From Auanema rhodensis (Eukaryota; Animalia; Nematoda): a DNA stretch of 64,000 nt. The DNA is taken from assembly GCA_964057225.1 (NCBI GenBank), contig OZ059895.1, forward strand, positions 13,330,001 to 13,394,000, in the 5' to 3' direction. Under the pieces are notes generated by a model that saw only the letters and a program-made list of their open reading frames with translations, did not search any database and was not told the origin of the DNA. Shown here one piece after another: positions 2,423 through 56,844 of this stretch; the stretch's first letter is position 1; every line of letters starts with the position of its first letter. The translations under genes were made by a program, and so were the position numbers.

Positions 2423-2512
2423 GAAAATACCTGATATTCAATGATTTACATACTTATCCTCGTTATTGTTTTTTTTTCCAATTTCATGTTAGTTATGTAA
2501 TTTTCTACGTTA

Positions 2513-2925
2513 CGTTCCATGGTGGTTCCCCAGGGTTCCGGCTGGGTAACCACATGGAATTACTTTCTTTTCTTCCAAATATAAATGATAAAGAGTATAG
2601 AGAGAAAGGTTTATTCATGATAAAGTATACAAATTACAATAATAAAAGTTACATAATGATTCCTAGTCGCAGCCCAAAGGACTCGTAAGGAAAACTTATA
2701 TAGTTTTCCTTACGAGCATAAAAAGTCGTTATATCAGGTCCGCGGAACTTGGTTCCGCTTGAATTGGGCTTTCTTTGATTAAACTTAATATGAAAAAGTG
2801 TTCGTTCTTTATTGCATTGAATTCCTGTTTCTCAAATGTAGCGTCAGCTATTTGTTTTTATAATGTTCCGTTTTATAAGCGATTGACGTTGTCAATCGCT
2901 CTACTTATAGGACACGTATGGAACA
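2513..2925 (-). repeat. E1 3' LTR
   Basis: Direct repeat of 10970-11382. Terminal IR TGTTCCAT/ATGGAACG, TATATAA near 2696-2702, AATAAA near 2610-2615 (minus). Confidence 0.95.
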
Positions 2926-3114
2926 TGCCTACTATCGAAAAAGTAGCTGACCTCAGCTACATCGAGAAAGTGAAATTCCATGCTAATATGAAAGTTGTAT
3001 GAAATGTTTCAAAAAATAAAAGAATACTGATAATACAGAACAATTTTATGAGAAAAAATGAAGGAAAACAATGTAATTACAAAATAGTATATCATATATC
3101 ATACTGGGAATCTT

Positions 3115-6100
3115 TCAAAAGTCCTTTTTAGTCTTAGAATATAATGTCAAATATTCGGCATACTCTTCAATTGCATCATTAAAGGGTGTAGTATTATTTA
3201 AAATCGGAGTTGGGATAGTTGCTGACGTTTTTTGGATATCATCGATCACATTTTCTGAAGTGTCAGATTCATTAGCCCTAGACTTACGCAATTTGGTAGC
3301 GATATATTCTCTAACACCGTTGAAGAGAGTTGTTGAGAACATAGTGTGTGGATGGTGTTTATCTTTAATGGTATTACCGGCGTTGTAGTCATTAGGAACA
3401 AGTTCCTCAGTTGAGTCAATTCGAAAGGCAGTCAAAAATCTTAACAGGGCTGCAATGCCCGAAAATATTGCGGTGGCATTAAATTTTGAATCAACGTGAA
3501 CCTGTTGTGCGACTGTAGAGGATATAAAATCATATTTTACAGAATTTCTACATAAATTATTAAAAATAATATTAGACATACAAATGGATTTAGGGAGACT
3601 GTTATATACATTATGAACTGATAATAAGTTATACAAAGAATTAACACATTGGTTGTGATGCGAATCTATAAAATACGAACGTTTATAGAGGTTATTTAAG
3701 CAATAATAGGAAAAGGCGCCACCAACAAATAGATTTAAATACGAAAATTTGAGAAATTTGGTTTTTTTTACATTAAAGGTGAAAGTAGTGTCTTGGGTAG
3801 CATCTGGTGTCGACGTAAATATTGGTTTAACAACCGATATTTCTGGTAATACATCAGTAAATTTAGTCTCTTCCAATTCTGTAAGTGGAGTACGCCGCAA
3901 CCAGTTACCATAAAAGTTTTCACCTAAATTTCCAGACATTCCCAATTGTCTGTCAAAAGATAAGAAAACAGGATCCAACGGTGGATGAATAATATGGGAT
4001 TCAATTGAGAAATTTACCAATCTCTCAAAATATCTAATAGCTTCTTGAGATAATACCATGTCGGTATACTTTTTCGCGACGAAGTATTTATGCAGACGAT
4101 AAAAATCATCGTTGGAAGTCTCAACAGCACGTAGAAGATCGGAATCACCAAGTGTCTCGACCCTCTTCTTTAAGTACCAATAAATAAAGGGCTTTGCAAT
4201 TCCCTGATCAACGCAAATTAAATTATACGGGGACAACTCGTGATGACGAGAGATAACATCCTCTGTTTCGCACACATCTGGATCTAAGACTGGATCACAT
4301 GACGGTTTTGAGCTTACAAGACCACCACCATATAAACCCAAAAATTTTTGAGGTTTTAGGTACTTGCGTAATGTGGATTCTAGTTCAATATCGCAATGAT
4401 TGAAAGGGAAGTCCTTACCGGATATATCCTTGATTTTTTTATCAAGAGTGTCGTAATATTTACTATATTGAAGATAGGTATTTAATCCGTCCGATCTTTT
4501 TATATCAAAATTGTTACAAACGGAGCGGAAAAACCCGGTGTAGTTAAAATCAGATCTTACAATTTCGGATTTAGTATACCCCTCACATAAAACATAAAAT
4601 TCACAAGAAATAGGTGTGGAGGTAGACAAGAAAAGAACCGTTAATTTCGCAAATCTCGAAAGTAATCGGCGCAATAAAATCTGAGTACTAATAGCATAAG
4701 GGTAAAACAGTTTAATAACCAATTTGCCGTTATCATGCAATAGATCGAATGCGGTGGAGATTTCAGCATAAATGAGATCATAGTTATTGTCAGCACGAAG
4801 AAGAGGATTAACAGCTGTTTCAGATATGGCTCCGTCAGCTAAAATAAGTAGTCTGTCATTGGTGTTCTTCTTTATTAATTCAACCATAGAGTTTCGAATA
4901 TCGTCATCAAGCAAATTTGACGATCTTGTTACAGGGTCACAATAGGGAGTTAAACGGTTATCGAATATTAACATGGATTTAGGTCCAGGCACAGCATGAA
5001 TAAAACTGTTAGAGTTATGTAATAAATATTCAGAAAACCCTCCGGGGCTAGAACATAAGTCGATTATATCGACATAACAGAAATCGATCAGCCCAAAGGC
5101 GTGTAATTCGCACAGTTTTAAGGCCGAGCGACAAATGTATCCTCCAGTGCCGATATTAGATGTAGGAGTCATTATGTTTTTAATCAGCTTATGTTTACGA
5201 TTAGAGACATTCTCAAAAGTTTTGTCATAAATGTCTCTGAATTTATCAATCAAAGGAGCGTCGTTACAATCGAACACATCGTCAGATGTTAATACCATCA
5301 AACGGTTCGGACAAACTTTCAAAGCAGAAAAATGACCAGGCGTATAATGAACGTGATATAATTGTTCAGATGCTAGCGTACGAGGAGTATAAAGTCGAAA
5401 CTGACCAGTGGAAGTATCGTGTAAGCAAATCTTAACACGGTATAGACCACTGAACAACTCAATATGCTCATCTGTTCCCCAATTATCAACATTAGAGGGA
5501 TCGTTAATACCGGCTAACAGAAGATTCTTTGTCTTCTCACCGATGTTAGGGGCATGGCTAAGTTTATCACGAATTGATGGTGGACTATCGGTAGTAGCAC
5601 CCGTAAGTCTCAAAGCGTGAAAAAGACAGTCGCCGTCACCAGGAGTGGGGATAATTTCAACGTTACTTTGGCAGGAATGTGAAACCGACACAGATACCGG
5701 TTCAAAAGACGTCGAAGTATCAATAACACCCTCTTCTGCATCAAAATACTCATCAGAATCTTCACCAGATGAACATTCGAAGTCATTAGGCAACCACAAT
5801 TTATATAGGGGATGGTCAATAGTCTTCCGTACTTCGCGATGGACAAGTTGGGAAACCTGTCGGTCAATATCAATATAACCGATATTACGGAAAATCTTTA
5901 TATCATAAAGAGTCCCGCCCAGTACACAATCCCGCCAACCCTTCATCCGAGATGTGTCGTCGCAAACAGTCTGGTCTGACATTGATGACACTGTAAGGTC
6001 ATTGTCATGAGCTTTAGACATGGCGGACAATAGGTTTTCGGTCTTGTCGGAATACTTCATCATGGAGAATAAACGGGTGAACCGGGGAAATAAGGATAAA

Positions 6101-7584
6101 GATCTAGAAATAGAAATGTCATCCGTCAATTCCTTTATAGTCTTAGTTGAACTGTAATTGCTGACATAAATTAGCATATAAACAGTATGAGCCAGTATTC
6201 GGAGAGTATCAGCAGAATGTCGTTCGTCAGAACTGGAGATTGTTTGTCCATTGACTACAACACGACTATCAAGAGAAATACCCATTGACAGGATATTTTT
6301 GACGGTGAATTTACCCTCACCCAAGGTCATACCATGTTTTAACATGTTTTCAAACAAGCTAGTTGATACACAGATATAAGCATATTTCAATTTATTTTTG
6401 GTTTTAAAAAAAGATGAAGATTCATCAAAATCGTATGTACGAATATAGGATTTTTTGTCGGAGTTCAATTTAAAAGTACGCCCGCTAATATGACGGGGAA
6501 TAGAAGTGTCAATCCTTGCAATGTCAAAGAAAAAATGACTCTTAAATTGTAATAGCCCAGCCACCGCATAACTATATAAAGAGGTGGTAGAAGTTAGAAC
6601 AAAAGCTTTTATGATAAAAATATAAGTGTCCCAACGATGAGTGTAACACAATTGAACATCGTTATCAAATGAGAATCTAATATATTCGACTCCAAACTGT
6701 TTATAGCGGGTAAAAGATGCGTCAATATCTGGTAACATACCATTTTTTTTAATTAAAACAACGGGGTCGAATAATATAACTCCGACGGCCCTAATAGCTT
6801 CACAGTTATCTAAGGTCTGAACAATGTCAGCTGGAGAAAGATCATAAACAGAATGTAAAAAGGATACAAAAGGGGCTTTTATCTTACAGTACTGGGAAAG
6901 TTGAGAACAAATATAATTAGAATCCATAGAGAGTATTTTTTTACAATGATAAACTTTATTGCTATCAAAGGAATTATTCACAATCATAGTTGCTTGAGCT
7001 ACGTAATTATTACGTCTAAAAACGTCAGCCGTGTTCACAACTGGACAGCAACAGTGAACGGAGTAAAAGCCACTATTAACAAACTGCATGGGATTTGATC
7101 CTATATCCTTTTGTACTACATGGTATTTACCGCTGGGTGTTAATGTCTTGAACATTTCCAAAGAGCGAAAGAATTGGTATCTTATGTAGTAAAAAGCTAC
7201 AGTGCGTAAGGCACGAGCTAGTGAATGAGGTCCACCATCGGTGTTACTGGTCTCAATTCTAAAACAAGAAAAATTTTTTTGAATGTCTTGTAATTGTTCA
7301 CTAGATAAAATCTGTTGTAATCTAATCAAAATTCGTCCCGAAGAGTCAAAATTAATTCACTTCATACGGTTGTCCAATACACTGGCTTTAACAGCTGCTG
7401 CAACACTACTATTTGGGTTGTTAAGGATTACATTTTTAAGGACGGGATCAAAATTTTTATCCGCTGATACGGATAAAAGAAAGTCTCCCATACATTTATC
7501 ATCTGTTGGAAATTTTTCAGATCGGTAACCGGTGTCGTCCATAACAATTAAGTTATTAGACGAAACGGCCGTGCAGTCATCCAT
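3115..7584 (-). pseudogene. Endogenous viral element: N-terminal part of a nege/kita-like (Martellivirales) replicase with Alphavirus-like MTase/GTase, OTU-like protease and FtsJ 2'-O-MTase; truncated before helicase/RdRp
   Basis: ATG at 7584 (MDDCTAV) is in frame with the 3115-7329 ORF, broken by one TGA at 7357-7359. MTase motifs GGPHSLARALR, KDIGS, VHCCCP..DVFR, LHSVYD. OTU motifs PGDGDCLFHAL..WG..GHF (~5320-5660). FtsJ K-D-K-E motifs RSALKL, DLCSSPGGF, LADGA, VIKLF, SCEFYV (~4575-5150). Confidence 0.9.
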
Positions 7585-7637
7585 AACTACCAGGTGACAC
7601 AATAAAGTGTCAATCTAGTAGAAGGAGAAAAGCAATC

Positions 7638-7887
7638 GACGTTGTCAATCGCTCTACTTATAGGACACGTATGGAACATGCCTAATATCGAAAAAGTAGC
7701 TGACCTCAGCTACATCGAGAAAGTGAAATTCCATGCAAATGTGAAAGTTGTATGAAATGTTTCAAAAAAATAAAAGAATACTGATAATACAGAACAATTT
7801 TATGAGAAAAAAATAAAGGAAAACAATGTAATTACAAAATAATATATCATATATCATACTGGGAATCTTTCAAAAGTTCTTTTTAGT
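7638..7887 (-). repeat. Internal duplication of the E1 3'UTR + pre-LTR hairpin + first 41 bp of U3 (copy of 2885-3132)
   Basis: gacgttgtcaatc...atggaaca-tgcc...ctgggaatctttcaaaag is repeated, with about 7 differences between copies. Confidence 0.92.
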
Positions 7888-8485
7888 ATTCTTCATAATA
7901 CTGGTGTATCTCTGGTAATGGTGATGATCCTAGGTCGTGGAGAAGATCCATAGTCTTGTTGCATAAATCCGTTTTTCTTTCCATTTCTTCCTTGGTGGTT
8001 GCTGGTGATGCCAGAAATATTTGTAGAGCATTTAAAATGCTTTTTCTTGCCTCTGTGGATGGCAGTTCGCTGCAATGTTGCAGGCTCCATTCTTGATAGG
8101 CCGAATGGGTCTCAGCAATAATCCAGTTTGGTGTCTGCTGTTCTGGTGAATCGCAACTAGGTGAATAACCTAGTTGGTCCCTTAGTTCAGCAATGGCATC
8201 TCGGATGACTCCTGCTGTGTTGGTCCATGGTCCTATGCAGTGGTCAACCTCCGACAGTTGATCCTTGTCGTATTGGTAACATAGGATTTTGAGCGTTTCA
8301 GTACTGGTGTTCGCTCTTGTTAGTCCTTGAACTAACTCTTTCAGGATCTTCTCTTTCCTGGGGCGGTTGGCGATGGTATTGGCGCCTAGCTGCTTCAATT
8401 CTCTTACTAATAGTTGAATTGAAAGCCATCTCTTTTTGGCCATCATGAGGGGAATTTCGATGGCTTCAGGGAGTTGGGTGGACAT
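7883..8485 (-). CDS. E1 accessory ORF3, ~200 aa helical/coiled-coil protein of unknown function
   Basis: Intact ATG-stop ORF. Aligns by eye with the ORFs ending at 13575 and 57409 (P..M.K..W..I..L..EL.QL; LRDQLGY/LREDLGY; P.W...E.H). Confidence 0.75.
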   Translation of the reverse strand: MSTQLPEAIEIPLMMAKKRWLSIQLLVRELKQLGANTIANRPRKEKILKELVQGLTRANTSTETLKILCYQYDKDQLSEVDHCIGPWTNTAGVIRDAIAELRDQLGYSPSCDSPEQQTPNWIIAETHSAYQEWSLQHCSELPSTEARKSILNALQIFLASPATTKEEMERKTDLCNKTMDLLHDLGSSPLPEIHQYYEEY

Positions 8486-8850
8486 TGTTATCTTTGTTAC
8501 TGTTTTCTGTCCTTTTTATCCTTTTTAAAACTAGGTCGGTCTGTTCCTTCCTTTTTGTCGCCTCCTTTTTGACCAGTTAGGTGAAAAAAAATGATGAAGA
8601 TTGTTGATTAAAACTTTGCAGTGATTTTTGAAAGATTCCAAGTATGATGTATAATTTTATTTTGAAATTTTGGTTATTGATACAATATTTTTATGAGAGT
8701 GAAAAAATAAAAATGTACAATAATTTGTGTAGAATTTTATGTCTTACTTAAATGAGAAAAAAAAATCATATATAGGTTCAAGTTTAGATGAAAATTATGA
8801 AAATGGTATTATACTTTTTGTGATTTTTATATAGAAATTATGGATTTTTA

Positions 8851-9175
8851 CTATTGTTCTAGCTTCTTACTTGTAGCCCCAATAACTGTTGACGGTCTTT
8901 TCTTATGGATGACTGGTACTGTTGGTGCCACGAAGTTTGGGTCCGGGATCGGACTCTTCGAAACTCTCTTCTTCGGCTCTGTTACTGGTATGGTGCTGTG
9001 ATACCTTATCGGCACATGATAAGGCTTTGCTGGCGTTGTAGGAGAATTATCTTCTAATCCCAATGCCAATTTAAGTGCTGAACTCCATTTCTTAATTGTG
9101 GGTGGCTCCTTCTTCCGTTCCTCATACAATTCTTTTCTTGCGTTTTCTTCTATTTTCTCTGATAGTTTGGTGAAT
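8851..9175 (-). pseudogene. E1 remnant of the Pol C-terminal tail
   Basis: KELYEERKKEPPTIKKWSSALKLALGLED...RPSTVIGAT matches the E4 C-terminus QELYEERRKEIPTTKRWSSALKLALGIED...RPSTVIGAT. Confidence 0.85.
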
Positions 9176-9589
9176 TTCGAGGAAGAGGAGAAGAAAGAAT
9201 AGCAGTATTTGGGTATGAAAATGATATTTGAGAATAATCTTTACAAGGGGAAGTATTTGTGCAAACATAGCTAGAGCTTTTGATAACGTTAGAATTGCGT
9301 TTAGGAGTTTGTTTGTTAATAGACGTTTTAATTTTACTAAGAGTAATAGCGTGGCGAGAAGTTTTGATAGCTGTTGTGCCTATTTTTTTTTGCGGGGGTA
9401 CCCGGTATAGCGGGTGGTTTCTTTGCAGCAGTAGGTCGGCGCTTCGTGTCCGGCTCATAAACATTTGGAGGTCCTCTCTTTCTTTGATTCTGCTCGAGTA
9501 CTGGCTCGACGTGCGTATCATTACCGGGGGGCTGCGCTCTGTGGATTTGTTTTATCCTGCGGAGGATTTTTACTCTTCGAGTCCGTCAT
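9170..9589 (-). pseudogene. E1 frameshifted remnant of the Gag N-terminal disordered region
   Basis: ATG at 9589 lies in the same context as the E2 gag ATG. QRKRGPPNVYEP resembles E2 RRKRQPPATYSP, and SSPLPRNSP resembles E2 SSPPLRNSP, in different frames. Confidence 0.65.
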
Positions 9590-10950
9590 CTTGTTGGTTT
9601 TCCTGGAAAGGAAATTATTATACCAACGATGCGAAACTTATAAAAATATATATACAACGTGAGAGGCAATATGGGGTTGTATGCGTGACGCTTGCTAGGG
9701 GGCCAGCCTGCAGCGAATCTTCTAACGGAGAATTGCTCAATCGGGTACATACACGGGCCTGTGACCGGTGCGCCCTTTCTAGGATCAAGTTCCCATCTCT
9801 CGAATAGGCGTGAAATATACGACGGTGATCTAAGCAGTATTCCCTTTCAGTCTTTCGACAAGATTAGGTGCTCAGGCCTCGAACATTCACTTTCCCAGAC
9901 TTCTCTTGCCTATGAAAAATTACAGAAATCGCTCCCTTAACGAAATTCTGCTTCCCTGATTTTTCATGGTGAGACCACTCTAACACTTTCATTCTCGACT
10001 AATTCTGTAAAGGGATCTTCAAAATCAGGAATGCGTACGTCTTATATCAAAAATAGTGGTTGCCTCCGCTCAGTTCTCGAGACAGTCTGGTATTGCTTCT
10101 CACGGGCTACTTTTAGGATCAAAATGCAAAATTGTAAATCTTAGGTTCGGGATTCAGATAAAAAATTTCAAAATTATTTGGCTGTTTTCTGGGTTATATT
10201 AGGAAGAAGAAAAAAAATAATAGTAATAAGAGAGGGAAAAAGATAAAATTTAAAAGAAGATAAAAGAAAAATAAAATAGGAATATAGTAGGAATATAGTA
10301 GGAATATAGTACTAGTATAGAATAGTTTTGTACATAAATATATATATATAAATGAGTAATACATTTTAAAGGATAGAATAGAAATTAATGAATTTTAATA
10401 TATATAAAACAATGAATTTTTTGATGATTCATGAAAGAAATTAATTCATTTTTGATTCAAAAATTGTTTGAAACTTTATAACAAAATTTTATGAGAGATA
10501 GAATAGATTTTGATTAAAAAAACAGAAAAAGAAAAGATTGACAGAAAAAAAAAATATCGAAATACCTTTCTTTGAATGAATAAATATAAAAGAATTTCAA
10601 ATTAATTTATGATAGTTATAAACAAAGTTTTTCCTCAAAAATGAATGAAAGATCTTAGAATATGGATAAAAATCGAAATGTTTCTTTTAAATGAATGAAT
10701 ATAAAATTTCAAAATTAAGTTGTTTCAAAATATATCTTTTTAAATAAATGTATATAAGATTTCAGTATTAATTTATGAATCAAAATCAAAATAAAGTTTT
10801 TTTGAATGAATGAAATAAAGAAGAGAAAGATTTCAAATTAAATTCATATAGCATAATCGAAATATAATTCTTTAATTAGATGTATGAAAGACAACAAAAT
10901 TAAATTTATGTAGCGAAATATGGTTCTTAGAGATTCGTCGGTTATAGACG

Positions 10951-10969
10951 AATCTCGGCGGAACCTCCA
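10951..10969 (-). promoter_or_regulatory. Primer-binding site for tRNA-Gln (E1)
   Basis: TGGAGGTTCCGCCGAGATT abuts the 5' LTR and is complementary to the eukaryotic tRNA-Gln 3' end (AATCTCGGTGGAACCT-CCA). Confidence 0.85.
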
Positions 10970-11382
10970 CGTTCCATGGTGGTTCCCCAGGGTTCCGGCT
11001 GGGTAACCACATGGAATTACTTTCTTTTCTTCCAAATATAAATGATAAAGAGTATAGAGAGAAAGGTTTATTCATGATAAAGTATACAAATTACAATAAT
11101 AAAAGTTACATAATGATTCCTAGTCGCAGCCCAAAGGACTCGTAAGGAAAACTTATATAGTTTTCCTTACGAGCATAAAAAGTCGTTATATCAGGTCCGC
11201 GGAACTTGGTTCCGCTTGAATTGGGCTTTCTTTGATTAAACTTAATATGAAAAAGTGTTCGTTCTTTATTGCATTGAATTCCTGTTTCTCAAATGTAGCG
11301 TCAGCTATTTGTTTTTATAATGTTCCGTTTTATAAGCGATTGACGTTGTCAATCGCTCTACTTATAGGACACGTATGGAACA
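10970..11382 (-). repeat. E1 5' LTR
   Basis: Direct repeat of 2513-2925, adjacent to the PBS. Confidence 0.95.
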
Positions 11383-11707
11383 GTTACATCTAAATTCTTC
11401 GATGATATCAAATCTTATGAGCTCCAAATACAATAAATTAAAAAAGGTTTCACAGTTGTATAGTGTTAAAACAATGTTTGTTTCAATAGGAAATAGATAG
11501 AAACAGTAAAGTTAAGATGAAGGTTCATAAACTACTGGTTTATAACTGTAATATAGAAATAAGATTGAAGATATTTTGATGCCTTGGGTTGAGCTATCTA
11601 AGTAAAACTGCTAGAAAATTAAAAACATTTGTTACGGAAGAGATAAAATTGAAAATCAGCTGCATTGCGTACTTTCAACGTGGTATGATCGTTAAAAAAA
11701 ATTGAAA

Positions 11708-12765: not shown

Positions 12766-12884
12766 AGCTCACGGCACCCGGGATTCCCAAGCCGTCTCCG
12801 ATCCAAGTACTAACCGGGCCCAACGTTGCTTGACTTGCCAGATCGGACGGGATGGCGTACTTTCAACGTGGTATGGTCGTAAGC
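12766..12884 (-). rRNA. 5S rRNA (1 variant nt)
   Basis: Array copy; gctcac instead of gcttac at the 3' end. Confidence 0.93.
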
Positions 12885-12973
12885 GAAAATATCTGATATT
12901 CAATGATTTACATACTTATCCTCGTTATTGTTTTTTTTCCAATTTCATGTTAGTTATGTAATTTTCTACGTTA

Positions 12974-13390
12974 CGTTCCATTTAGATTCTCAATGGTTCC
13001 AAGTTGAGAGATCCAAACAGACTATGAGAAGATGAGTATGATTTTAAATATAAGTGTGTAATGTAAGGTGAAATAAGAAACAAAAGATGAAATGTATAAA
13101 GGTTTATTGTTCGCATTATAATATAATTATACAAAGATTAAAGCTAGAGTTAAGAAAGAGAATATAAAGAAGATAAAGAGAAAGTAAGATAATGAGATAA
13201 TGAGATGCCTGAGTCTTGAGGACTCAGGTTTATATATCCATACAACTCCTACTCAGTTTACACAAATTGTTACAAAGCTTATAAAAAGTGCATCTAAAAT
13301 ATTCTCAGAATTGCTTAAAAACTATCTGCCTTAGTTTAATAATAGCAGCTGCCATGGTCAGCTGCTTTCCTTTGAGATATGTATGTAACA
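12974..13390 (-). repeat. E2 3' LTR
   Basis: Direct repeat of 24880-25296; sense ends TGTTACAT...ATGGAACG. Confidence 0.95.
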
Positions 13391-13574
13391 TGCCCCAACG
13401 GATACAAGTCAGCTGACCTCAGCTGTTATATGCAAATAATAATTAAGAGAGAAAAATAAAAATTAAAAAAAAAATGGCATGAGATAAAGCAAATTTTTTC
13501 AACAAACTATTGATAAAGAGAAAAAATTTTAAGAGATAGAATTTTATAAATGATTTAAACCTTTCCTCTCTTCT

Positions 13575-14219
13575 TTAATCCGCCAGTTGGTCAATTTCCT
13601 GGATCATTTCCGTCATTGATGCTAGTCCAAGCAGCTCCATTGTTCTGATGGTTTGGCTAACTGCTTTTGCCTTACTTTTTGATGCGGACATGTTGGTAGT
13701 CCTTTTTTTCAGTAGTTTTTTGATTACTACTGATAGGTCTTGCCCTATCTCTATCCACGATGCTTCTTCTTCTGTTCCGCAATTTCCTACAGCTTGTTGT
13801 GTCATCTGTGTTGTCCACGTCGGCATTGCTTTGTAGATGTCAGCTGTGGTCTGCGTTCTGGCGGGTTGTCCCAGCATTATGTGTCGGATTCTGTTCTCTT
13901 TCTGGCTGAGAGAACATCCTTCTGTCCATTTCTTTTGATGCTGGCGAAGCTCCTTCAGATCGTTTTCCTCATAGTTTTTGGTTTTCTCCTCCAATAGTTC
14001 CATCATAAATAGGATGTGCTGTGTCTTCTTTTCCAATTTGCTCGTTTGGAGGCTTATTATTGGTCCTAAGTTGGGCTTCATGCAGTTGATAGGTAGAAGA
14101 CCTTCACGAAGGTTTTCTACCTCTATCCATTCTTGTTCAATAGTGGTCGCTAGAGGGACCAGTGGTGTTGGAGTTGCGAGGAATGTAGAGAGTGTGACGT
14201 TGGCGAGAGAGGAGGTCAT
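13575..14219 (-). CDS. E2 accessory ORF3 (~214 aa from MTSSLAN), unknown function
   Basis: ATG at 14219; homologous by eye to E1 and E4 ORF3, in the same position after pol. Confidence 0.72.
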   Translation of the reverse strand: MTSSLANVTLSTFLATPTPLVPLATTIEQEWIEVENLREGLLPINCMKPNLGPIISLQTSKLEKKTQHILFMMELLEEKTKNYEENDLKELRQHQKKWTEGCSLSQKENRIRHIMLGQPARTQTTADIYKAMPTWTTQMTQQAVGNCGTEEEASWIEIGQDLSVVIKKLLKKRTTNMSASKSKAKAVSQTIRTMELLGLASMTEMIQEIDQLAD

Positions 14220-14422
14220 TTTGAGTAAGAAAAGTGTTATTGAATTTTTCTCTATCAAAATTTTCTCTTTATATAGTTTGTTTTTCAGTGATTGTTACAA
14301 TTTGTTAAAATTAAAGGATAGAAATTAGAATTTCGGTGGTTTTTGATCTATGTCTTATGTTTAATGTACTATACGAAAGAAAGAAAAATTATTTTTACAA
14401 TTCTACGATTTTTGTTAGTTAA

Positions 14423-17400
14423 TTAAAAGTTTCGTACTTGTTCTCCTTTGTTTTGCGTTGGAGATTCATTCTGCTGCTTTTTGCTTTGATCCGCTTTTCC
14501 ATGTAGTTCCAATTCTCCATTACTTCTGATTTCTTCGTCTTGTGTTTTTCTTTTGGGTTGTAGTTTAACATGATACGGGCGTGAGTTTTCATTTCCTATT
14601 CCTAGTGCTGCGGCAAGTGTAGTGTTCCAATTTTTGATTGCTGGTGAGTTTTTGTTTCTGTCCTCAAATAGCTCCTTTCTGTTTTCATTCTTGAATTGAT
14701 CTCGTAGCTTTTCGTATGTTTTTGCGTTATTATCTTCTATATCGTTTTGATTAGGACCTTCTTCTTGAGAGAAAGGTGTCAGCTGTCTGAGGTCCTCTTG
14801 AATTCTGTCGATTGTTGTTGATTCATTTTCTAATTGTATATTAGAATTTGTTATTCTTCTTGCTGTAGCAAGGTCGTCAGGTGTTTCTGAATTATGTTCA
14901 ATTTCTTCTTCGTTTACTCCTCTGTTATTCCCTGTGATAGGTAACAGTTGCGCGAGAGTATCTGGACTGCCTGTTGGGTAACAGTTGTTGTTATTTTCCG
15001 TATTATTGGTTTGTTCCCATTCATTCAGATTATTCCAACTTGCTTCTTCTTCTTCTTCTTCTTCGTTTGCTATGTCTTGGTCCTCTTCTTCCTCTTCTTC
15101 ATTATTTCTTGTTGATATAAGATTATCGTCTGGTGGAAAATAACGTATGTTATTTTTGTGAGCTTTTATAATATTTCCATCTTGGTCCGTTATGCTGATG
15201 TTGTTTCCTTCAATTGTCACTATCCGGTAAGGTCCATCTCTTCGTATTTGTAATTTGTTGCTTGGGTTCGCTCTTTGTACAAATACTCGATCTCCTATAT
15301 CCAATATTCTTTCTTTTGTCCTATGTGCTTGATCGTATTTCTGCTTCATTCTTTCTTCGTTGGTGGCAATCTTTTCCTTGACTTTTTCTTGAATATCTCT
15401 TAAGTTTTTGAGCTGATCCGTGATATTTTGTTCTTCCGGTGTTTCCAAGTTTTTGTCAATGGGTAGACGTGCTACTTGTCCAAACAAACATTCGTATGGT
15501 GATGTTTTAGTGGTGGCGTTTGGTAATCTGTTGAGTGTAAAAATAATCTTCGGAAGTATCTTATCCCAATCGTTTTGTTCGTCATTAACGTAGGCTGTTA
15601 ATGCTTCTTCGATCGTCCGATGCAATCTTTCTACTTGTCCGTTAGCGTTTTTGTAATACGGCATAGTAGTGTGGTGTGTAGTTCCAAAATTACTGCACAT
15701 AGTAGTGAAATCGTTTGAAATAAAATTAGATCCATTGTCTGTGATGATAGTAACAGGTGGTCCAAAAACATAAAAGAGATATTTTTCGATAGCTGATATA
15801 ATTTCTCCTGATGTTTGTCTGATTAGCGGAATTGCGATAATCCAATTTGAAAAAGAATCTTGAATTGAAAGAACATATCTGTTTTCTTGTTCTGTCCTAG
15901 GTAATGGTCCGAGTATATCCATGTGTACTCTTTGCCATGGTTTTGTTGATGTTGGAAAATTTTTCATTGGTTCCACCGTTGCTTCGTGAGGATTGTTCTT
16001 TCTTTTTGCACAAGCAAGACATCTGTTGATGTAGTTTGTAATGTCTTCTTGCATTCCAGTCCATGTAAATCGTCTTGATATTGAGTCCATTGTTTTGTTT
16101 ATCCCTAGATGAGCTCCGAGTGTCGGATCTTCATGAAATTTCTTCATAATTGGATTAATTATGTGTTCTTCTCGTGGTAAAATTGTTCGTGGTACTTGTA
16201 GGCTTCTTTTTGGTTTTGAGTATAGTACATCGTTGTACACAATATATCTGTCCGTCAGTTGTCGTCCAGCTGTATTGTTCTTTATTTTATCCATAGTTTC
16301 TTTTATCCAATTTGATTGATTCTGAACTGATCGAATATCTGCTATCGTGAAGGTGTTTATCTGATGAATAGTATCTTCCGCCGTTTTTCTTTCGTTTTTC
16401 TTCTTTGCTGGTGGTTTTGCTTCGTTGATTTCATTTTCAAAATATCGTGATAATGCGTCACATACACTGTTTAATTTTCCTGGTCTGTAGATAATTTCAA
16501 TATCGTATTCTTGTAAAACAATTTGAAATTTTGCTAAACGACCTATTAAATCCTTTCTAGTCATTAAACTAGTGAGTGGTCTATGGTCCGTGATAATTTT
16601 GGTTGCTGTTCCTAGTATGTAGGTGCGAAATTGTTTGACGGCGAATGTAAGAGCTAATGCTTCTACTTCTATTGGTGGATAATTCCTTTCAGCTTTGTTG
16701 AGTTTCCGACTAGCAAAAGCTATTGGATGTAATGGTTCTTGATCGTCTTTCGCTTGAAGTAGTACAGCGCAAACTGCTATCATACTTCCATCACTTTCAA
16801 TAACATATGGTCGCTTCGGGATTGGTGCTTGTAACACAGGTGCTTGAGTCAATGTTTTCTTCAAAGTATTAAAAGCAGTTTCTTCTTCTTCTGTCCATTT
16901 GAACGGAGTGTCTTTCCGAGTGAGGTTGTAGAGTGGTGTTGCTATTCCTGCAGCGTTCTTTATGAACCTTCTGAAGTAGTTTACTACTCCCATGAAAGCT
17001 CTTACTCCTGTTGTTGATTTTGGTTGGGGATAATCTTGTATTGCCTTAATTTTATGTGGGTCCGGTTTAATTCCTTCTTGTCCAACTATGTATCCTAGAA
17101 ATTTTACTTCCTTTCTTGCGAATGCGCATTTCTTCAGTTTTATTTTGAATCCTATTTGAGTTACTGCTTCCAAAACTTCTTCAATATCTTTTAAATGTGC
17201 TGTCGTAGATTCAGAGATTAACAGTAAATCATCTAGATATACGAATAGCTTGCATTTAACCATTGATTGCAGGTATCGTACTGCGTTTTGAAAAGTATGG
17301 GGTGATCCACATAATCCCATCGGCATTCGACAATATTGATAAGTTCCACTTGTTGTTGTGAAAGCTGTAAGATGACGATCTTCTTTCTTAAGAGGTATTT

Positions 17401-20400
17401 GGAAAAATCCAGATACTAAATCAAAGTTGCTGAAGATCCTTGCTCCAGCGGCCAAATCTAGGATGTCCTGTATGTTTGATATAACATATACTTGTTTCTG
17501 AGTGATTGCATTCAAAGCTCGAAAGTCCGTTACAAATCTGTAAGTTTTGTCTTTCTTCTTCACCAAAATTACTGGACTAGTTGTCATTGAGTTTGATGGT
17601 TCAATGATTCTTTGTTGTAGCATTTCTTCTATTTGTTTCTCCACTTCTTCTTGTTGGGAGAGTGGTATACGATAAGTAATTTTGAATGATGGTGTTTTTC
17701 CTGGCATGATTGGAATGGAGTGTTCAATTGGTCCTAGGAAGAGTCCGATATTTCTATCTTCGTTGAGAAACGCTTGTTTATGTAGTAAAATTATTTCTTT
17801 CAGTTGCTGTTGTTCGATTTGTGAGAAGCAGGCTTCTGAAAGGTCAAGCTCATTGATGAAATTGTCTGGGAAATATGGCAGTTGTTCTTCCCATCGAGCT
17901 TCTGGAGGTATGTATTGTCCTTCGTATTTTTCTTGGTTGTCCTTTGGTATCGCTTCTGCTATCCCTATTTCTTGATTCATTTGAATTTCGAGTGGCTGTT
18001 TGCATATGTTCGTCGCGTAAATTTGTACTCCGTATCCAGTTGGCGTAAATATAGTAGGCGTGAAAGAGAGTTTGTTGCCTGGTTTCTTACAATCTAGAAA
18101 CGCCTGTTCATAGCTTTCTGGATCGTGTACTTCTAGCGTGAGCGTTCTTGTTTCTCCTGGTCTTAGCGTTTTGTTTTCTAAGCTAACCACATATGCTTTC
18201 GTGGTCTGGTGTTCCCACGGAGATGTTTCTCGTGCTAGTGGAACATGTGTTGTGCCGATAACAATTGTTTTATCCAGCGGTCGAAGTGAGGTGTAAATTC
18301 CTTGTTGATGTAATGCTTCCATGAAGTCTATTCCAAGTAACACTGGTGCTGGACAGTAGTTATCTTCTGCTACATAAAATTTGTGTTCTGTTTCTGTTGT
18401 TCCTATTGTTATGAGGATCCTTGTGTATCCCATAAATGAGAATTTAGATTTATTCGCGACTATCGCTGTTGTTTGTTTTAGTACCATCGTTGCAGCGGGC
18501 AGTTGTTTGAAGGTGGATTCTCGCATGTATGATGCTGATGCTCCCGTGTCCCATAGTGCCTTAAAGATGTGATTGTGGATTGAAATCGGGACAAACGGTA
18601 ATTGTGATCCTCCTATGTAGTTTATGTTTTCTTTCTTCATGCTTGTAGGGAAATAAGCTTCATAAATGTGTTCAGGAATTGGTGCTGAAGGATCATACAA
18701 TGTGAGTTGACAGCTGTTGTGATGGTTGTCGACGTATGGAGCGGACGGAGAAGGATGAGATGTTTCTGTTCTTGTGTTCTCAGTTGATAGTGGTTGTAAG
18801 TATTCTGCTTCCCATTTGACATTGTTGATGGGTATCCTTGAACTACATGCGTATATTTTTATTATCCAGGTGGCGAGTGTGATTATGCCAATTGTTATGA
18901 TGATTGATCCAATGATAGCAAGTACGCGTAGTGTCCAGGTTTGAATCTTTTCCCATATTGGTGACAGAAAGTCAAACATTTTCCAAGTTATAGCTTCTTT
19001 TGTATGTTCGTAGCTGAGTAGTAAGCTGCTGGCTGCTCCTGCTGTTAGGGTAACAGGGTTCATGTTAGGAATTGATCTTTGTTTGATTACAGGTTTTATT
19101 CTTCCTGGTAAAGTAGCCTGTAGCGTTGCTAAGCTGGATCCATATGATATTGCTAGTGCCATAGGAAACGTTGATTCTGTTAGGTTGTTGAAAATGTTGC
19201 TTCCATTAAACTTGATATGTTCTAGGTTGATTGATCCTAACTCGTCGATGTATGCTGGTGATGTTACATTTATTGATTGGTTATTATTAGTCCATTGATC
19301 GTTTTCTTTCCAGGGATCCTTGATTGTGAATCCGCATGGTATGGCATGTGCCATCGGTGTGAGGTCTCTTGTACCTGGTAGGATGAACAGTTGGCCGTGA
19401 TGTTCCGTTTCGACTGGGGTTTCCAGAAAACACGTGCTGTTGACTTTGTGATCGCGGTATGTTTTTGTAATTTGAATTGGTGTGCATGGCATTACATAAA
19501 TTAGTTTATCATTTATGAATCTTGCAGATATATCCTGTCGTCGTAGCATTGTACGCATCCCTATAGTAGGATTTATTTGAAGAATAGCCCACCAGGTAAG
19601 TAGTTGTTTATTTTGTACGTGGCAGATGTTGTTTCTGTTTGTTGTGAACGTACGTATGATATCATCTTCCAGATTGGTAGTGGCATATTGTAGATGAGAT
19701 TGCGTTTCTTGTTGATGAAGATGTTCATTCCATTTTTGGACGATATCGTTCTTAGCTTTAAGGTAGTCTACGTGAGCTTTCTTACCAATATGTGATGATA
19801 TTTCTTCAGGTGTGCTGCGAGTGGTAGTGATAGATCTTTTTGTAGTTCTTGGAGGCGGTGACTTGGTGAGTGATTCTTTCCTATTGTATTCCTGGCTTGA
19901 GGTGATTGTGATTGGGTTTGTAGTAATATTGAATGTAGATTGGGGGGTGGAGAATGATTGTGTTGGTCGATGAGTGGTGAATATAGTTGTGGTTGTTGTA
20001 GGTGTTGTGGTTGTTGTTGATCTGGGTCTAGCAGTAGTAGAAGTAGTAGTAGTAGTAGTGGTAGTAGTAGTAGTAGTTGATGAAGACGTGGGTATTGTTG
20101 GTTTGGGTCTAGTTGTTGTGGATATATGTGTTTTGGGTGTGATTGTCGAAGTGATGACGTTCCTTATGGTTGTAGGCTTAGGGGTCGTGGTAGTGGTTGT
20201 AGTAGTAGTTTGTAGGGGGGTCGAAGTGCTTCTAATTGTGGTTGCAAAAGGTCGTGTTCCGGGAGTACTGATAAGGGGTAGATAATGATTATAAAATTTT
20301 TCACTATCCTCTTGTGTAATGCTATAATTTGTAGGATTTCTTTTCCGGAAGCCGTAGAATATATCGTCGCCATCGAAGATAACTGTGTAGTTTGGCAGTT

Positions 20401-23623: not shown

Positions 23624-24861
23624 CGTTGGTATCCTGTAAGGAAATTTGTTATATCCAACGTGTGCCAAAATAATTTTATATATAGAAAAACGTAAAGAAT
23701 AATGTTGGGTTTGTGTGCGCGATTCTTATGAAGGTAGCTAGTCTTGCAAGTAATCTCTTTACCAATATAGCTCGTCCGGGTCTAACACAGGTTTGAAACT
23801 AGTGTGCCTTTTCGAAGGGACAAGTTCTATATTGTGAAAAAGGCATGAAATGAAAGTTAATAGTTCGCCAGTCTTTTGGGACAAGGATACAAAATAGAAT
23901 TTTCGCAATCATTTCATTTTCCCAGACCTCATTAACCTATCTGAGTCACAGGTATGTCAGCTGCCTTCTGCATCCTGCTCCCTGACTCTATGATGGCGAG
24001 ACCACTCTTAGTATTTATATCAATGTGGGGCAGGTTTCAATTCAAAAATTCTCTAATTATTTCATGGGGCGTACGTCTTATCCTGAGTGTCGGCCTCCGC
24101 TCGAGTCTCTTGAGTGTCTGGCATTATTCTTAACGAGGGGGGATGGTTTTTGCGTATGAGTTAAAACTTATTGATTAATTTAATTATTTTTCGTATTTTC
24201 AGGTGCTAAGGTAATCGGAATTTGGATACGCTGCGCCTAATAAATATTTTTACTGTCGTGTTTAACACGGGATTTCTTGTTTATGAAATTACGGGGGGGG
24301 GGGGGGGGAGGGGTGGGTTTATGAGAATACAGTGTAGTAGCATAAGAATAATAGTTTTATAAACGAACATAAAGAAAATAATGAAAATATGGTATGATAG
24401 GATGATTAAGATAGTATGATAAGATGAAGATTCAGATAATATGATAAGATGATTAAGATTGAGAGGTATAGAAGCAATATTCTTTTTTATTTCTTAATTC
24501 TAAATTAATTTTATAAAGAACTTAACTATTTTTGTTCAAAAAATGTGAAAATAAACTTATAATTCTTAGAAAAGTTAATTATTGAATTTGAATAATTTTC
24601 GTATATAGGATTTTGGATAGAGAGAATGATAAATGATATAAGTACTCTTATGAATAATTGAAAATGATTTATGAGAATATAATGAATGGAAAACTGAGTT
24701 TTTGTAAATAGTTTTTGGATATAATTTTTAATAGAAAAGTTTTAGAGTTTTTAAGAAAATATTATAAGCTAACTTTAAGAGAGAGATAAGATTTTTAATT
24801 GAAAAAGAGATGTAGACGGTAGCGCTTGAGTTCCTTTACGAGATCCTGTCCAAAAGGAAGG

Positions 24862-34785: not shown

Positions 34786-35122
34786 CGTTCCGTTATGCTC
34801 TCACGTCGATCCTATAGACCAATAAAGCCTACAAGATGAGTGTGATAGTATTCCAGATGTAGCGGTAGATAAAGAGCATAATGGATAAACATAAGACTCG
34901 AGAAAGAAAGGTTTATTATGTCTACATGATTACAATAAGTTATATAAGTCTACATAAAGATATAAAGTGAAAGAGAGCTAAGAAAGGAAGACCAACCATC
35001 CATAGTCATTCCATAAGGCAAAGCTGAAGTCTGTGTTCCATATGAAGGGCGTGTCGTCCTCTCTCAGCCTCATGTCGTCTGATTCTAACCCGCCTGCTAC
35101 GTATTGATTTCCGAATGGAACG
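34786..35122 (-). repeat. E3 3' LTR
   Basis: Direct repeat of 45915-46251; sense ends CGTTCCAT...CGGAACG. Confidence 0.95.
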
Positions 35123-35819
35123 TGCCATTTTTTCGAGTTTATGTCGCGTCCTCGCGAATAGCAAAATATGTGGCTTGTTTCAATCGTAGCAGAAGGTTTA
35201 GTTTTTAAAAAATAAAAATTACAATGTTAACATAAAAATAGTAAAGATAAATTACAATATAATGTTAAACAATATTATCTGAAAAGAATTTAATAAAAAT
35301 TATTTGAAAATACATGAATATTAAGGAATAAAACAATCTTTTAGAATACCAGGGCTATATTTTGTCAGCGAAAGTGCGCAAAATAGCTTTTTAGGCACGA
35401 CGCTGCATGTCTAACTTCTTTGAGTATAGAGAAACGAGAGTCATGCTATATTATCGATGGAGCTAGCATGTTTCCTCAGCGTATTCAAAGCGAATTGTAA
35501 TAATAAAAAAAATTAAACTAAATCCCATATAATTTCCGGAATTGAATCATTAACTACTTGATAAGGACTGTTGCTCAGATGATTATGCAATATAATGTCT
35601 CTTATCTTTCATTTCTTCTTTATTTACGGGAAATTATTTGAAATTGATGAAGTTTTATAATCATATATGCTTTGAAACTGAAATGCTTTTTGATTATTAG
35701 CTTACATCTCGTCTTACTCAAGTTTTTCAATGATATAATAATATTAATAGCTCTGGTTTTTTAAAAGAGTGTTGATACAAAGTTTTACAATAATTTTATC
35801 AATCTCGAAATTATTTCTT

Positions 35820-44504: not shown

Positions 44505-45901
44505 TTTGGTAGCGCTCTTGGTTTGGAAAAACCTTGAGTGTTTAGTAACGTGGGGGATTTTGAGACGTTAATGAGTGTTATGGATAAGGAGTTTTGGAAA
44601 AGGGGTGAGAAAGCTGTGAGTAACTGGTTTGTATAGTCGGCGTTAAGGAATGAATCTAAGTTGTGGCCTTTAACAGAGATCCGCCTACTACCGTATGAAA
44701 ATTTGGACTTTGTTCGCTTTCCAATTTAATATTCTTAAATGTATATAATTCAACCAGTTTGTATATGTTCAAAAAATGTTCAGTGCTTACTTGATTGATG
44801 CCTGAGCAATCTCATTAGTCCTTATTCCCATTTTTTTTTCTTTTTCTGACGATTCTGATCTTCTTGGACTCACGAGTGATCGAAAATGCCACGAAAATGG
44901 ACTTTGGTAAATGTTCAAAGGATTTTAGCGGTTTTCATAATGTACATTCGTAATAGCATTACTCTTTTAAGGAAGCAATTTGGAAAACGAATGAGTACCG
45001 TAGTCCCATCATGATCAGAAATCTAGTTTTAAAATTATGACTAGGAATAGATGACTAAAGATTACAATAACTATATTTAAAGAATTATGGTGTTTAGGAG
45101 TGAGTCTTATGCTTCAAAACAACAATAACGGTATGAGGAAGGTGACATATAGTAAGGGGAGAAAATCCAAACTGATATGCTTAAGCCAACACGACCTGAT
45201 AGACAATCACTAATAATAATTCAGTTCGTAAAATTGTACAGGATTTTTCGGACTATAGCGATCTTAAAATTCACTTTTCATAATATTCCTCCCATTTAGG
45301 TGAGGTTTCCCGTGTAAATTCAATGCGTTATCAAAATATTTTTGGATGTTAATGGCAAAAAGTTGTCTGAACAGAAATGTAACGCAAAATAAAATAGTCC
45401 TGATCGCAAAATATGAAAGAATCTCAAATTGGTGCGCAAAATTGTTTCATCCACAAAAATAAAGAAATAACCGTGGCTATTCTTTCCTCGAAGCCAAAAT
45501 CAATCCTTAAAAGGAGAAAGTGTGGGCATAAATCTCAAAAAAAATTATCCTTGGGTGAATTTGTTCACTAATTCATCCTAGGGTCCTCAAAAATGCTTCG
45601 AGTTCGGGTAACAGAGTATTCGATGTTAACAGCAAGGATATAAAAATTGTTGGGTTCAGACAGACAGAAAATTGTGAACAAACGGGAAAATATAACTTCA
45701 GTTTCAAAAAATATAAAATCCATCTCCAAAAGGAGTGGTCCTTGCATCTGTTCCCTTTTAAACGTTGTTGGCCCCACCGTATTGTGTTAAGACATGGAGT
45801 AGATGGTGTAGAGATATAAGAGAATTCAGATTCAATGAAATGTAGTAAAAATAACGAAATATAAGAGAAAATAGTCAAGAAATCAAGATAAAAATGTTCG
45901 A

Positions 45902-45914
45902 GGTGGAACCTCCA
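45902..45914 (-). promoter_or_regulatory. Primer-binding site for tRNA-Gln (E3)
   Basis: TGGAGGTTCCACC directly after the 5' LTR. Confidence 0.82.
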
Positions 45915-46251
45915 CGTTCCGTTATGCTCTCACGTCGATCCTATAGACCAATAAAGCCTACAAGATGAGTGTGATAGTATTCCAGATGTAGCGGTAGATA
46001 AAGAGCATAATGGATAAACATAAGACTCGAGAAAGAAAGGTTTATTATGTCTACATGATTACAATAAGTTATATAAGTCTACATAAAGATATAAAGTGAA
46101 AGAGAGCTAAGAAAGGAAGACCAACCATCCATAGTCATTCCATAAGGCAAAGCTGAAGTCTGTGTTCCATATGAAGGGCGTGTCGTCCTCTCTCAGCCTC
46201 ATGTCGTCTGATTCTAACCCGCCTGCTACGTATTGATTTCCGAATGGAACG
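45915..46251 (-). repeat. E3 5' LTR
   Basis: Direct repeat of 34786-35122. Confidence 0.95.
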
Positions 46252-46615
46252 TTTTTTTTCCAATTTCATGTTAGTTATGTAATTTTCTACGTTACATCTA
46301 AATTCCTCGATGATATCAAATCTTATGAGCTCCAAATACAATAAATTAAAAAAGGTTTCACAGTTGTATAGTGTTAATACAATGTTTGTTTCAATAGGAA
46401 ATAGATAGAAACAGTAAAGTTAAGATGAAGGTTCATAAACTACTGGTTTATAACTGTAATATAGAAATAAGATTGAAGATATTTTGATGCCTTGGGTTGA
46501 GCTATCTAAGTAAAACTGCTAGAAAATTAAAAACATTTGTTACGGAAGAGATAAAATTGAAAATCAGCTGCATTGCGTACTTTCAACGTGGTATGATCGT
46601 TAAAAAAAATTGAAA

Positions 46616-56139: not shown

Positions 56140-56258
56140 AGCTTACGGCACCCGGGATTCCCAAGCCGTCTCCGATCCAAGTACTAACCGGGCCCAACGT
56201 TGCTTGACTTGCCAGATCGGACGGGATGGCGTACTTTCAACGTGGTATGGTCGTAAGC
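56140..56258 (-). rRNA. 5S rRNA
   Basis: Array copy. Confidence 0.95.
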
Positions 56259-56668
56259 GAAAATATCTGATATTCAATGATTTACATACTTATCCTCGTT
56301 ATTGTTTTTTTTCCAATTTCATGTTAGTTATGTAATTTTCTACGTTACATCTAAATTCCTCGATGATATCAAATCTTATGAGCTCCAAATACAATAAATT
56401 AAAAAAGGTTTCACAGTTGTATAGTGTTAAAACAATGTTTGTTTCAATAGGAAATAGATAGAAACAGTAAAGTTAAGATGAAGGTTCATAAACTACTGGT
56501 TTATAACTGTAATATAGAAATAAGATTGAAGATATTTTGATGCCTTGGGTTGAGCTATCTAAGTAAAACTGCTAGAAAATTAAAAACATTTGTTACGGAA
56601 GAGATAAAATTGAAAATCAGCTGCATTGCGTACTTTCAACGTGGTATGATCGTTAAAAAAAATTGAAA

Positions 56669-56787
56669 AGCTTACGGCACCCGGGATTCCCAAGCCGTCT
56701 CCGATCCAAGTACTAACCGGGCCCAACGTTGCTTGACTTGCCAGATCGGACGGGATGGCGTACTTTCAACGTGGTATGGTCGTAAGC
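56669..56787 (-). rRNA. 5S rRNA
   Basis: Array copy. Confidence 0.95.
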
Positions 56788-56844
56788 GAAAATACCTGAT
56801 ATTCAATGATTTACATACTTATCCTCGTTATTGTTTTTTTTCCA

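Follow-up and report, generated by a model that had tools for sequence, protein, structure and literature searches.

Clustered insertions of LTR elements upstream of 5S rRNA genes suggest an integration preference in the nematode Auanema rhodensis

Introduction

[quoted passage not shown] Here, four long terminal repeat (LTR) elements, designated E1 to E4, were analyzed in a 64,000-bp stretch of the genome of the nematode Auanema rhodensis (GCA_964057225.1, contig OZ059895.1, positions 13,330,001 to 13,394,000 of the forward strand; hereafter "the window"), which holds a tandem array of 5S rRNA genes. All of the insertions (4/4) are located at -47 to -89 of 5S genes, a zone of about 43 bp in the 529-bp array unit, in a small sample from a single locus. 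An integration preference is, with moderate confidence, the best reading of the window.

The closest described systems resemble these elements in part. Ty3 of S. cerevisiae and Tj1 of S. japonicus are likewise LTR elements of the Ty3/gypsy type with insertion sites upstream of Pol III genes. Their insertions lie 1-10 bp from the start site as opposed to 47-89 bp here; they reside in fungal hosts, are only distantly related in pol, and are not known to have an envelope domain or a fixed orientation. Ty1 belongs to the copia superfamily and uses a broad window of about 1 kb, unlike the elements studied here, within which its insertions display nucleosomal periodicity. Ty1 is an LTR element that inserts upstream of Pol III genes including 5S, its integrase binding Pol III subunits via a short motif in the disordered C-terminal tail (PMC7459421; PMC5911963). 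E2 and E4 likewise possess long disordered acidic integrase tails, and sequence similarity to the Ty1 tail was neither found nor expected. Tj1 is recorded at a 5S rRNA gene as well as at tRNA genes (PMC5911963). The retrotransposons TRE5-A and NLTR-B of dictyostelids prefer positions 37 to 64 bp upstream of Pol III genes, with 5S among the targets of TRE5, a range near the positions of E3 and E4 (Cheung et al. 2018, PMC5911963). They differ in being non-LTR elements of amoeba hosts that use target-primed reverse transcription, in being tethered by ORF1 binding to TFIIIB rather than by integrase, and in having no counterpart of the -89 site seen in E1 and E2.

R1/R2, the zebrafish long interspersed nuclear element Mutsu, and the Dada DNA transposons cut one defined sequence, usually inside the gene. 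A single in-gene target of this type is not displayed by E1-E4, which use three tetramers, all in the spacer, and which are neither non-LTR nor DNA elements. Exploitation of redundant RNA-gene arrays as a low-cost niche is the shared feature, Mutsu being listed as inserting into 5S (PMC3706591, PMC10946416).

Regarding animals, the table of Pol III-targeting retrotransposons in one review covers S. cerevisiae, Dictyostelium, and Polysphondylium, its text mentions Tj1 of S. japonicus in addition, and a term search of the review found no mention of animals, metazoans, or nematodes (PMC5911963). In a 2026 review on insertion niches, the Pol III example is Ty1/Ty2, inserted upstream of tRNA genes, and no animal LTR element is named in the part available (PMC13269885). 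In the corresponding part of a 2024 review, transposable elements in animal 5S spacers are described only for fish, with no claim of targeting (PMC10946416). No report of a nematode retrotransposon targeting 5S or Pol III genes was found in full-text literature searches. As far as could be found, the type of element and the strategy are each known, and the combination of an animal host, an envelope-bearing lineage, and a -47 to -89 window at 5S is new.

Insertion sites and junctions

The array was delimited by Rfam matches and by BLAST of the canonical unit against the window. It contains 42 full-length 5S rRNA genes, all on the minus strand with a spacing of 529 bp (Rfam scan). Every broken unit was aligned base by base to the canonical unit, and positions are given in canonical numbering relative to the 5S start.

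about 2087-56844 outside the inserts, minus strand: 529-bp tandem 5S array (Rfam RF00001 and BLAST of the canonical unit)
2513-11382, minus strand: E1, with target site duplication (TSD) GTTA at 2509-2512 and 11383-11386, canonical -86 to -89
12974-25296, minus strand: E2, with TSD GTTA at 12970-12973 and 25297-25300, canonical -86 to -89
34786-46251, minus strand: E3, with TSD TTTT at 34782-34785 and 46252-46255, canonical -47 to -50, within a T8 run
56845-64000, minus strand, other end beyond the window: E4, with TCCA at 56841-56844 on one side only, canonical -54 to -57
2304-2422, minus strand: 5S gene downstream of E1 (Rfam RF00001, 107.5 bits; 0 substitutions relative to the array majority)
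12766-12884, minus strand: 5S gene downstream of E2 (Rfam)
34617-34735, minus strand: 5S gene downstream of E3 (Rfam)
56669-56787, minus strand: 5S gene downstream of E4 (Rfam)

The TSDs and the exact empty sites demonstrate that the insertions were made by an integrase with a 4-bp stagger. A perfect 4-bp TSD flanks each of the three complete elements (3/3), and the distance between the flanking 5S genes equals unit plus element plus 4 bp for E1, E2, and E3 (9404, 12856, and 11999, respectively), so that the empty sites are restored exactly. The boundaries are confirmed by the 4-bp TSD and TG...ACG LTR ends of relatives in Diploscapter and C. nigoni. A model with a 5-bp TSD was dropped, as it requires differing element ends in E1 and E3 while the TSDs of the relatives fit 4 bp. 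It can be observed that E1 and E2 share exactly the same target nucleotides and that two preferred positions emerge, at about -50/-57 and at -89. A preliminary description of this DNA had given the same TSD positions, apart from -87 to -90 for E1, a shift explained by a run of nine T in the unit that E1 occupies, and each of its measurements was borne out.

E1-E4 have the same sense strand as the 5S genes, the minus strand, and in each the 3' LTR faces the gene. Insertions are absent from the 119-bp gene, from the first 46 bp upstream, and from the remaining spacer of about 320 bp within the window; mapping of the unit left only five non-array segments (1-1957, 2514-11382, 12975-25296, 34786-46250, and 56845-64000). 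The 5S gene next downstream of each of the four elements is intact (0-1 substitutions) and retains the native region from -1 to -46, in which a TATA-like GTATGTAAATC is located near -30. Every insertion spares the internal 5S promoter and at least 46 bp of the native DNA upstream of the gene. Further upstream, at -47 to -54, lies an A8 tract on the sense strand (T8 on the other strand). The co-orientation, the intact genes, and the empty remainder of the spacer agree with what had been described earlier, as does the recent activity: the LTR pairs differ at 0/413 positions in E1, 1/417 in E2, and 0/337 in E3, and these three insertions are recent.

On the sense strand the LTRs end in ...AACG rather than in the usual ...CA (ends at 2513/2925, 12974/13390, 34786/35122, and 56845), and the LTR of E3 additionally begins with CG. 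BLAST of the canonical unit detected no unit-like, 5S-derived sequence within the inserts, and a 5S-carrying element of the Cassandra type was rejected on this ground.

Chance, accessibility, and selection

If insertion were uniform along the 529-bp unit, an arc of at most 39 bp would contain all four events with p = 0.0016, or p = 0.0002 when one exact site coincidence is also required, and for insertion limited to the 410-bp spacer the corresponding values are 0.003 and 0.0004; all were computed after the fact, for a window picked because it looked odd. The local density is also high: about 22 kb of array DNA holds four young insertions, each of a different family.

A pattern of this kind might arise with no targeting whatsoever. 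Integration would then be random or directed to open chromatin, the array would tolerate the copies, and the clustering would reflect accessibility, such as a linker or nucleosome-free stretch by the A8 tract, or the loss of insertions that silence a unit. Multicopy rDNA does tolerate insertions, and the zone borders an A8/T8 tract, a type of sequence that disfavours nucleosomes. Moreover, insertions of transposable elements in 5S spacers are frequent in plants and, among animals, in fish, as stated in a review (PMC10946416). Nevertheless, this explanation is regarded as rather improbable. The near-identical LTRs mean that there was little time for selection to sort the insertions, and losing one of many 5S units should be close to cost-free, so that selection could hardly empty about 320 bp of spacer. 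Exact reuse of a site by two families (p about 0.0002) and the presence of four young insertions of four families in 64 kb also argue against it. The clustering is read as an integration preference because selection had little time and one lost unit should cost little.

Structure and lineage of E2, E3, and E4

12974-25296, minus strand: E2, 12323 bp, full-length; LTRs 12974-13390 and 24880-25296, 1 mismatch in 417
14423-23668, minus strand: single open reading frame (ORF) of E2, 3081 codons; Pfam matches for gag, a gB/class III fusion glycoprotein-like domain, protease (PR), reverse transcriptase (RT), RNase H, and integrase (IN)
34786-46251, minus strand: E3, 11466 bp, full-length; LTRs 34786-35122 and 45915-46251, identical over 337 bp
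35820-44504, minus strand: ORF of E3, 2894 codons; Pfam domain order as in E2
56845-64000, minus strand: E4, 3' part of a full-size element reaching the window end; 3' LTR 56845-57183 (junction alignment)
58265-63877, minus strand: env-pol ORF of E4; Pfam domain order as in E2 and E3 as far as the window reaches
57409-58134, minus strand: small ORF2 of E4

Judged by their sequences, E2, E3, and E4 are autonomous-looking members of one lineage of Ty3/gypsy gag-env(gB)-pol endogenous retroviruses. In all three, Pfam identified PR-RT-RNase H-IN with a gag-like capsid upstream, the matches to Retrotrans_gag and Ty3_capsid being weak. A gB-like domain (PF24664 and PF00606) is predicted at about residues 1320-1585 of E2 and E3, between gag (about 300-390) and protease (about 1670-1790), and is located in the same order relative to pol in E4. 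Directly after the 5' LTR, a primer-binding-site (PBS)-like TGGAGGTTCC(A/G)CC that starts with TGG is present in E1-E3 and in the relatives, and the purine tract before the 3' LTR is short. Gag, the gB-like envelope domain, and pol share one uninterrupted frame in E2 and E3 (about 2900-3100 codons), within which no family match was obtained for a stretch of about 900 residues that separates gag from the gB-like domain.

In a quick pol tree with support from the Shimodaira-Hasegawa-like approximate likelihood ratio test (SH-aLRT), without bootstrap, E2 and E4 are sisters with 80% identity over RT-IN, with E3 next to them at 59% identity. Together, these three make up a clade (SH-aLRT 99) within a nine-row nematode clade that also contains gB-bearing elements of Caenorhabditis and Diploscapter (SH-aLRT 100). 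When all of env-pol is compared, the three pairs are 63%, 44%, and 43% identical. The LTR bodies are unrelated between elements, with only about 50 nt at each end common to E1 and E4. The "four distinct families" of the preliminary description therefore hold at the level of LTRs and families but not as independent cases: E2, E3, and E4 are one clade, E1 is an E4-like derivative (see below), and one inherited preference suffices. The convergence proposed at that time would be with the yeast and amoeba elements, not among E1-E4 themselves.

Relatives in other nematodes

Homology searches of pol returned, as the closest relatives of the inserted elements, only elements of rhabditid nematodes (Heterorhabditis, Auanema, Caenorhabditis, and Diploscapter), which accords with the animal host assumed at the outset. 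The best identity to any named relative is 59% over the RT-IN query, and some matches cover only about half of the query. As for further copies, exact matching of six proteins encoded in the window against the protein collection gave none, a metagenome scan gave only integrases with 24-26% identity, and a scan of viral contigs gave none.

Eight loci of relatives were scanned: two of C. remanei, one each of C. nigoni, C. auriculariae, C. brenneri, Diploscapter pachys, and Ancylostoma duodenale, and one metagenome contig. An LTR-type repeat pair is present in six of the eight, among which the first C. remanei locus ends at a contig edge; no pair was found at the metagenome contig or at the second C. 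remanei locus. The 4-bp TSD, the LTR ends TG...ACG, and the PBS-like TGGAGGTCC are common to the Diploscapter and C. nigoni relatives (L002, L003). As a group, the nematode gag-env(gB)-pol endogenous retroviruses share with E2, E3, and E4 the order gag, gB-type fusion glycoprotein, PR, RT, RNase H, and IN, and the Diploscapter and C. nigoni relatives share with the window elements the 4-bp TSD, the LTR ends TG..ACG, and the PBS-like TGGAGGT(T/C)CC. The relatives differ in their surroundings: the window elements lie beside 5S, whereas the relatives scanned do not lie beside Pol III genes. At none of the eight loci (0/8) does a 5S or tRNA gene adjoin the element, and the only tRNA genes found among them lie, measured from the end of the 3' LTR, about 3.9 kb away in C. 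remanei and about 3.2 kb away in C. auriculariae. Association with 5S therefore characterizes the clade in the window and not nematode gB-bearing elements generally, the count of 0/8 bearing on the wider clade rather than on the families of the window. Insertion of the relatives at ordinary sites is also a point in favour of the explanation without targeting.

Nematode gag-env(gB)-pol Ty3/gypsy endogenous retroviruses were reportedly treated by Sacco et al. in 2022 (J Gen Virol 103:1739), a paper that a 2026 eLife article cites for them. That article, on "ancient errantiviruses", already describes gag-env-pol with a gB-type envelope for nematode endogenous retroviruses (eLife 2026 RP108449, PMC13524379). 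A term search of it found no mention of integration sites (PMC13524379).

Integration preference and choice of site

The reading considered moderately probable is that one nematode endogenous retrovirus lineage prefers a short zone upstream of 5S rRNA genes and that this preference is inherited within the clade. It would have arisen once in the host lineage, since relatives in other nematodes are without it. Mechanistically, the integration complex may respond to a positional cue that is set by the transcription complex on 5S (TFIIIA/TFIIIC/TFIIIB or Pol III) or by the phased chromatin that this complex imposes, and such a cue would work as in Ty3, Tj1, and TRE5-A. The E3 and E4 sites are at the distance that would be expected for the upstream edge of TFIIIB, and the -89 site would be a step farther upstream, perhaps on the first nucleosome. 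By landing in a redundant multicopy array, an envelope-bearing element could accumulate at low cost to the host. A narrower claim is put forward only tentatively, namely that an envelope-bearing animal lineage independently evolved tethering to the Pol III/5S machinery, in convergence with Ty3, Ty1, and TRE5, which steers both autonomous members and cargo-carrying derivatives into a germline safe harbour. This claim forms part of the preference reading and does not add to its weight. Describing the insertions as Pol III-targeted is an extrapolation, as 5S genes alone are visible: the tRNA scan gave 0 tRNA genes in the 64-kb window, and no Rfam family besides 5S was found in it.

Several points weigh against a preference of this kind. 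The events number only four, or perhaps five, and come from a single window that was chosen post hoc. The orientation bias alone has a probability of 1/8 to 1/16 and is not significant by itself. Two positions about 35 bp apart represent a looser choice than Ty3-like precision. The IN alignment contains no integrase feature that is common to E2, E3, and E4 yet absent from non-targeting relatives. The integrase core and the SH3-like region are conserved with those relatives, and the tails that follow the SH3-like part diverge from one another; they are acidic and of low complexity, with about 230 residues in E2 and E4 and about 70 in E3. The small 3' ORF was not found in E3, and no shared targeting module emerged. 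The lack of a tether candidate is not strong evidence against a tether, because in Ty1 the targeting signal consists of a short motif within a disordered tail (PMC7459421).

The last of these points concerns the target nucleotides. The E1/E2 site lies within ATGTAACG (-92 to -85, sense strand; 2509-2515 and 12970-12976), which matches the 3'-terminal octamer ATGGAACG of the E1, E2, and E4 LTRs at 7/8 positions. This raises the explanation that site choice is directed by sequence, with an integrase that prefers motifs of the 5S spacer, for example those similar to the end of its own LTR. Under this explanation, the elements would be specialists of the 5S spacer, absent from tRNA and U6 genes and in their logic nearer to rDNA- or snRNA-specific elements than to Pol III-tethered ones. 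Four observations are in line with this: E1 and E2, of differing families, use four identical nucleotides; ATGTAACG is identical to the last 8 nt of the LTR of the C. nigoni relative; GTAACG occurs once in the unit, and the TSD of E4 falls within its only TGGAA; and the relatives elsewhere have no association with Pol III genes. On the other side, the three tetramers differ (GTTA, TTTT, and TCCA), E3 is inserted in a plain T run, and the match to the LTR end was found post hoc, its chance probability being put at roughly 1% once registers, strands, and ends are allowed for. Integrases of the retroviral type usually have only a weak target consensus, and known sequence-specific elements of RNA genes use a single site, usually inside the gene. 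Direction by sequence is regarded as fairly unlikely. The earlier view that targeting is positional rather than sequence-specific retains the support of the differing tetramers, which had been reported correctly, and is weakened by the match of the octamer to the LTR end.

If the preference for the zone upstream of 5S is true, the safe-harbour strategy would be widened to cover Metazoa as well as elements bearing a viral fusion protein. The case would also offer a tractable system, close to Caenorhabditis, for the way in which an integrase reads a Pol III promoter, and a natural example relevant to site-directed gene delivery. If a genome-wide preference is absent, what is left in the window is an unremarkable cluster of young retroelements within a repeat that tolerates insertions.

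E1, a defective element with RNA-virus cargo

2513-11382, minus strand: E1, 8870 bp, non-autonomous; 3' LTR 2513-2925 and 5' LTR 10970-11382, identical over 413 bp (self-BLAST); PBS-like TGGAGGTTCC after the 5' LTR
8869-9174, minus strand: remnant of the IN C-terminal tail, 63% identical to E4 as against 37% to E2 (tblastn/blastp)
7883-8485, minus strand: small 3' ORF, 200 aa, 30% identical to ORF2 of E4
7630-7887, minus strand: second copy of the polypurine-tract region and the first 49 nt of the LTR, 96% identical to 2877-3132 (self-BLAST)
3115-7329, minus strand: cargo ORF, 1404 codons without a stop; Pfam FtsJ at aa 731-918

E1 contains no PR, RT, or IN, and only the remnant of the IN tail and the small 3' ORF are left of the coding region of the element. 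The pair of 258-bp direct repeats (7630-7887 and 2877-3132; 96%) brackets 4.5 kb of foreign sequence, in which the cargo ORF is located. No Pfam match other than the FtsJ methyltransferase was found for this ORF, and a word-based homology search gave no match. An exhaustive HMMER search returned 246 relatives, the best of which are proteins of 2000-2900 residues. Four of the relatives were scanned with Pfam: FtsJ, Viral_helicase1, and RdRP_2 are present in all four (4/4) and Vmethyltransf in two as well (2/4). Residues 2-945 of the cargo ORF align to 56-986 of the best match, P0056, with 30% identity (E 5e-124), including an OTU-like cysteine protease motif. The ORF thus comprises a methyltransferase-like region, the OTU-like motif, and the FtsJ methyltransferase, without the helicase and the RNA-dependent RNA polymerase. 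A host gene was rejected as its source, as the exhaustive search and Pfam give RNA-virus replicases as relatives.

From these homologies, the cargo ORF is identified as the N-terminal part of an RNA-virus replicase of the alphavirus supergroup (nege/kita/virga-like). E1 is accordingly a defective E4-like retroelement into which the 5' half of the replicase gene of an RNA virus was captured, and hence a recent endogenous viral element. Capture may have proceeded via read-through packaging followed by template switching, for which the bracketing repeat would be the expected footprint. Integration of E1 would have been performed by the integrase of a helper, probably from an E4-like family not seen in the window. 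With its long open fragment of an RNA-virus replicase, E1 arrived recently at the same site as E2, so that a preference such as that described above can also place endogenous viral elements.

Inverted segment at the left edge of the window

1-2085, plus strand: inverted segment, of which 1-1958 is a partial E1 copy with 3 mismatches to 2513-4470
1959-1962, plus strand: co-inverted taac (alignment)
1963-2047, plus strand: 5S upstream region -85 to -1 (alignment)
2048-2085, plus strand: 5S nt 1-38 (alignment)

The inverted repeat (1-2085 and 2385-4470) is 99.85% identical, with its arms 299 bp apart, and a filler of about 11 nt without a match joins the segment to the spacer. Relative to its own 5S fragment, the inverted copy is co-oriented. 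Its flank carries the T/8-T haplotype, shared with 17 units, and the flank of E1 carries C/9-T, unique among the 42 units; the two flanks differ at two markers that are polymorphic in the array. The copy may stem from a separate event in which the family of E1 inserted into another unit at this same position, followed by rearrangement. It may equally represent an inverted duplication followed by a homopolymer slip and conversion, and a fold-back artefact of assembly is possible. It is not counted as a fifth independent event. The earlier remark that the inverted copy uses the same site is right in that the taac is present, but it does not stand as a separate event, since the inverted segment includes -89 to -1 and 5S nt 1-38.

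An inverted repeat of this kind is what fold-back reads or rearrangements make, and arrays are hard to assemble. The clustering as a whole might therefore be suspected of being an artefact or of lacking independence, through assembly errors in repeats or unequal crossing-over that amplified one or two insertion-bearing units. Such an origin is highly improbable. The LTR bodies of E1-E4 are unrelated and their pol proteins are only 43-63% identical overall, the three sites each have their own exact TSD and a restored unit and cannot be copies of one event, and the flanking units bear different array variants.

Composition and variants of the array

The G+C content is about 34% in the array as opposed to 37-43% in the inserts, which are strongly A-rich on the minus strand; such A-richness is usual for retroelement coding strands. 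The 5S sequence itself is presumably nematode-like. Across the array, unit position -8 (sense strand) is G or A about equally often, five units have a run of nine T instead of eight at -47 to -54, and a C36T variant recurs in five 5S genes. The array is a mosaic of variants, and these three markers are usable for tracing the history of units. Furthermore, each unit contains a short 5S-like fragment about 9-45 nt 3' of the gene on the sense strand, just past the terminator T run (for example 25696-25732, plus strand). It resembles 5S nt 5-31, a partial internal duplication of the gene start.

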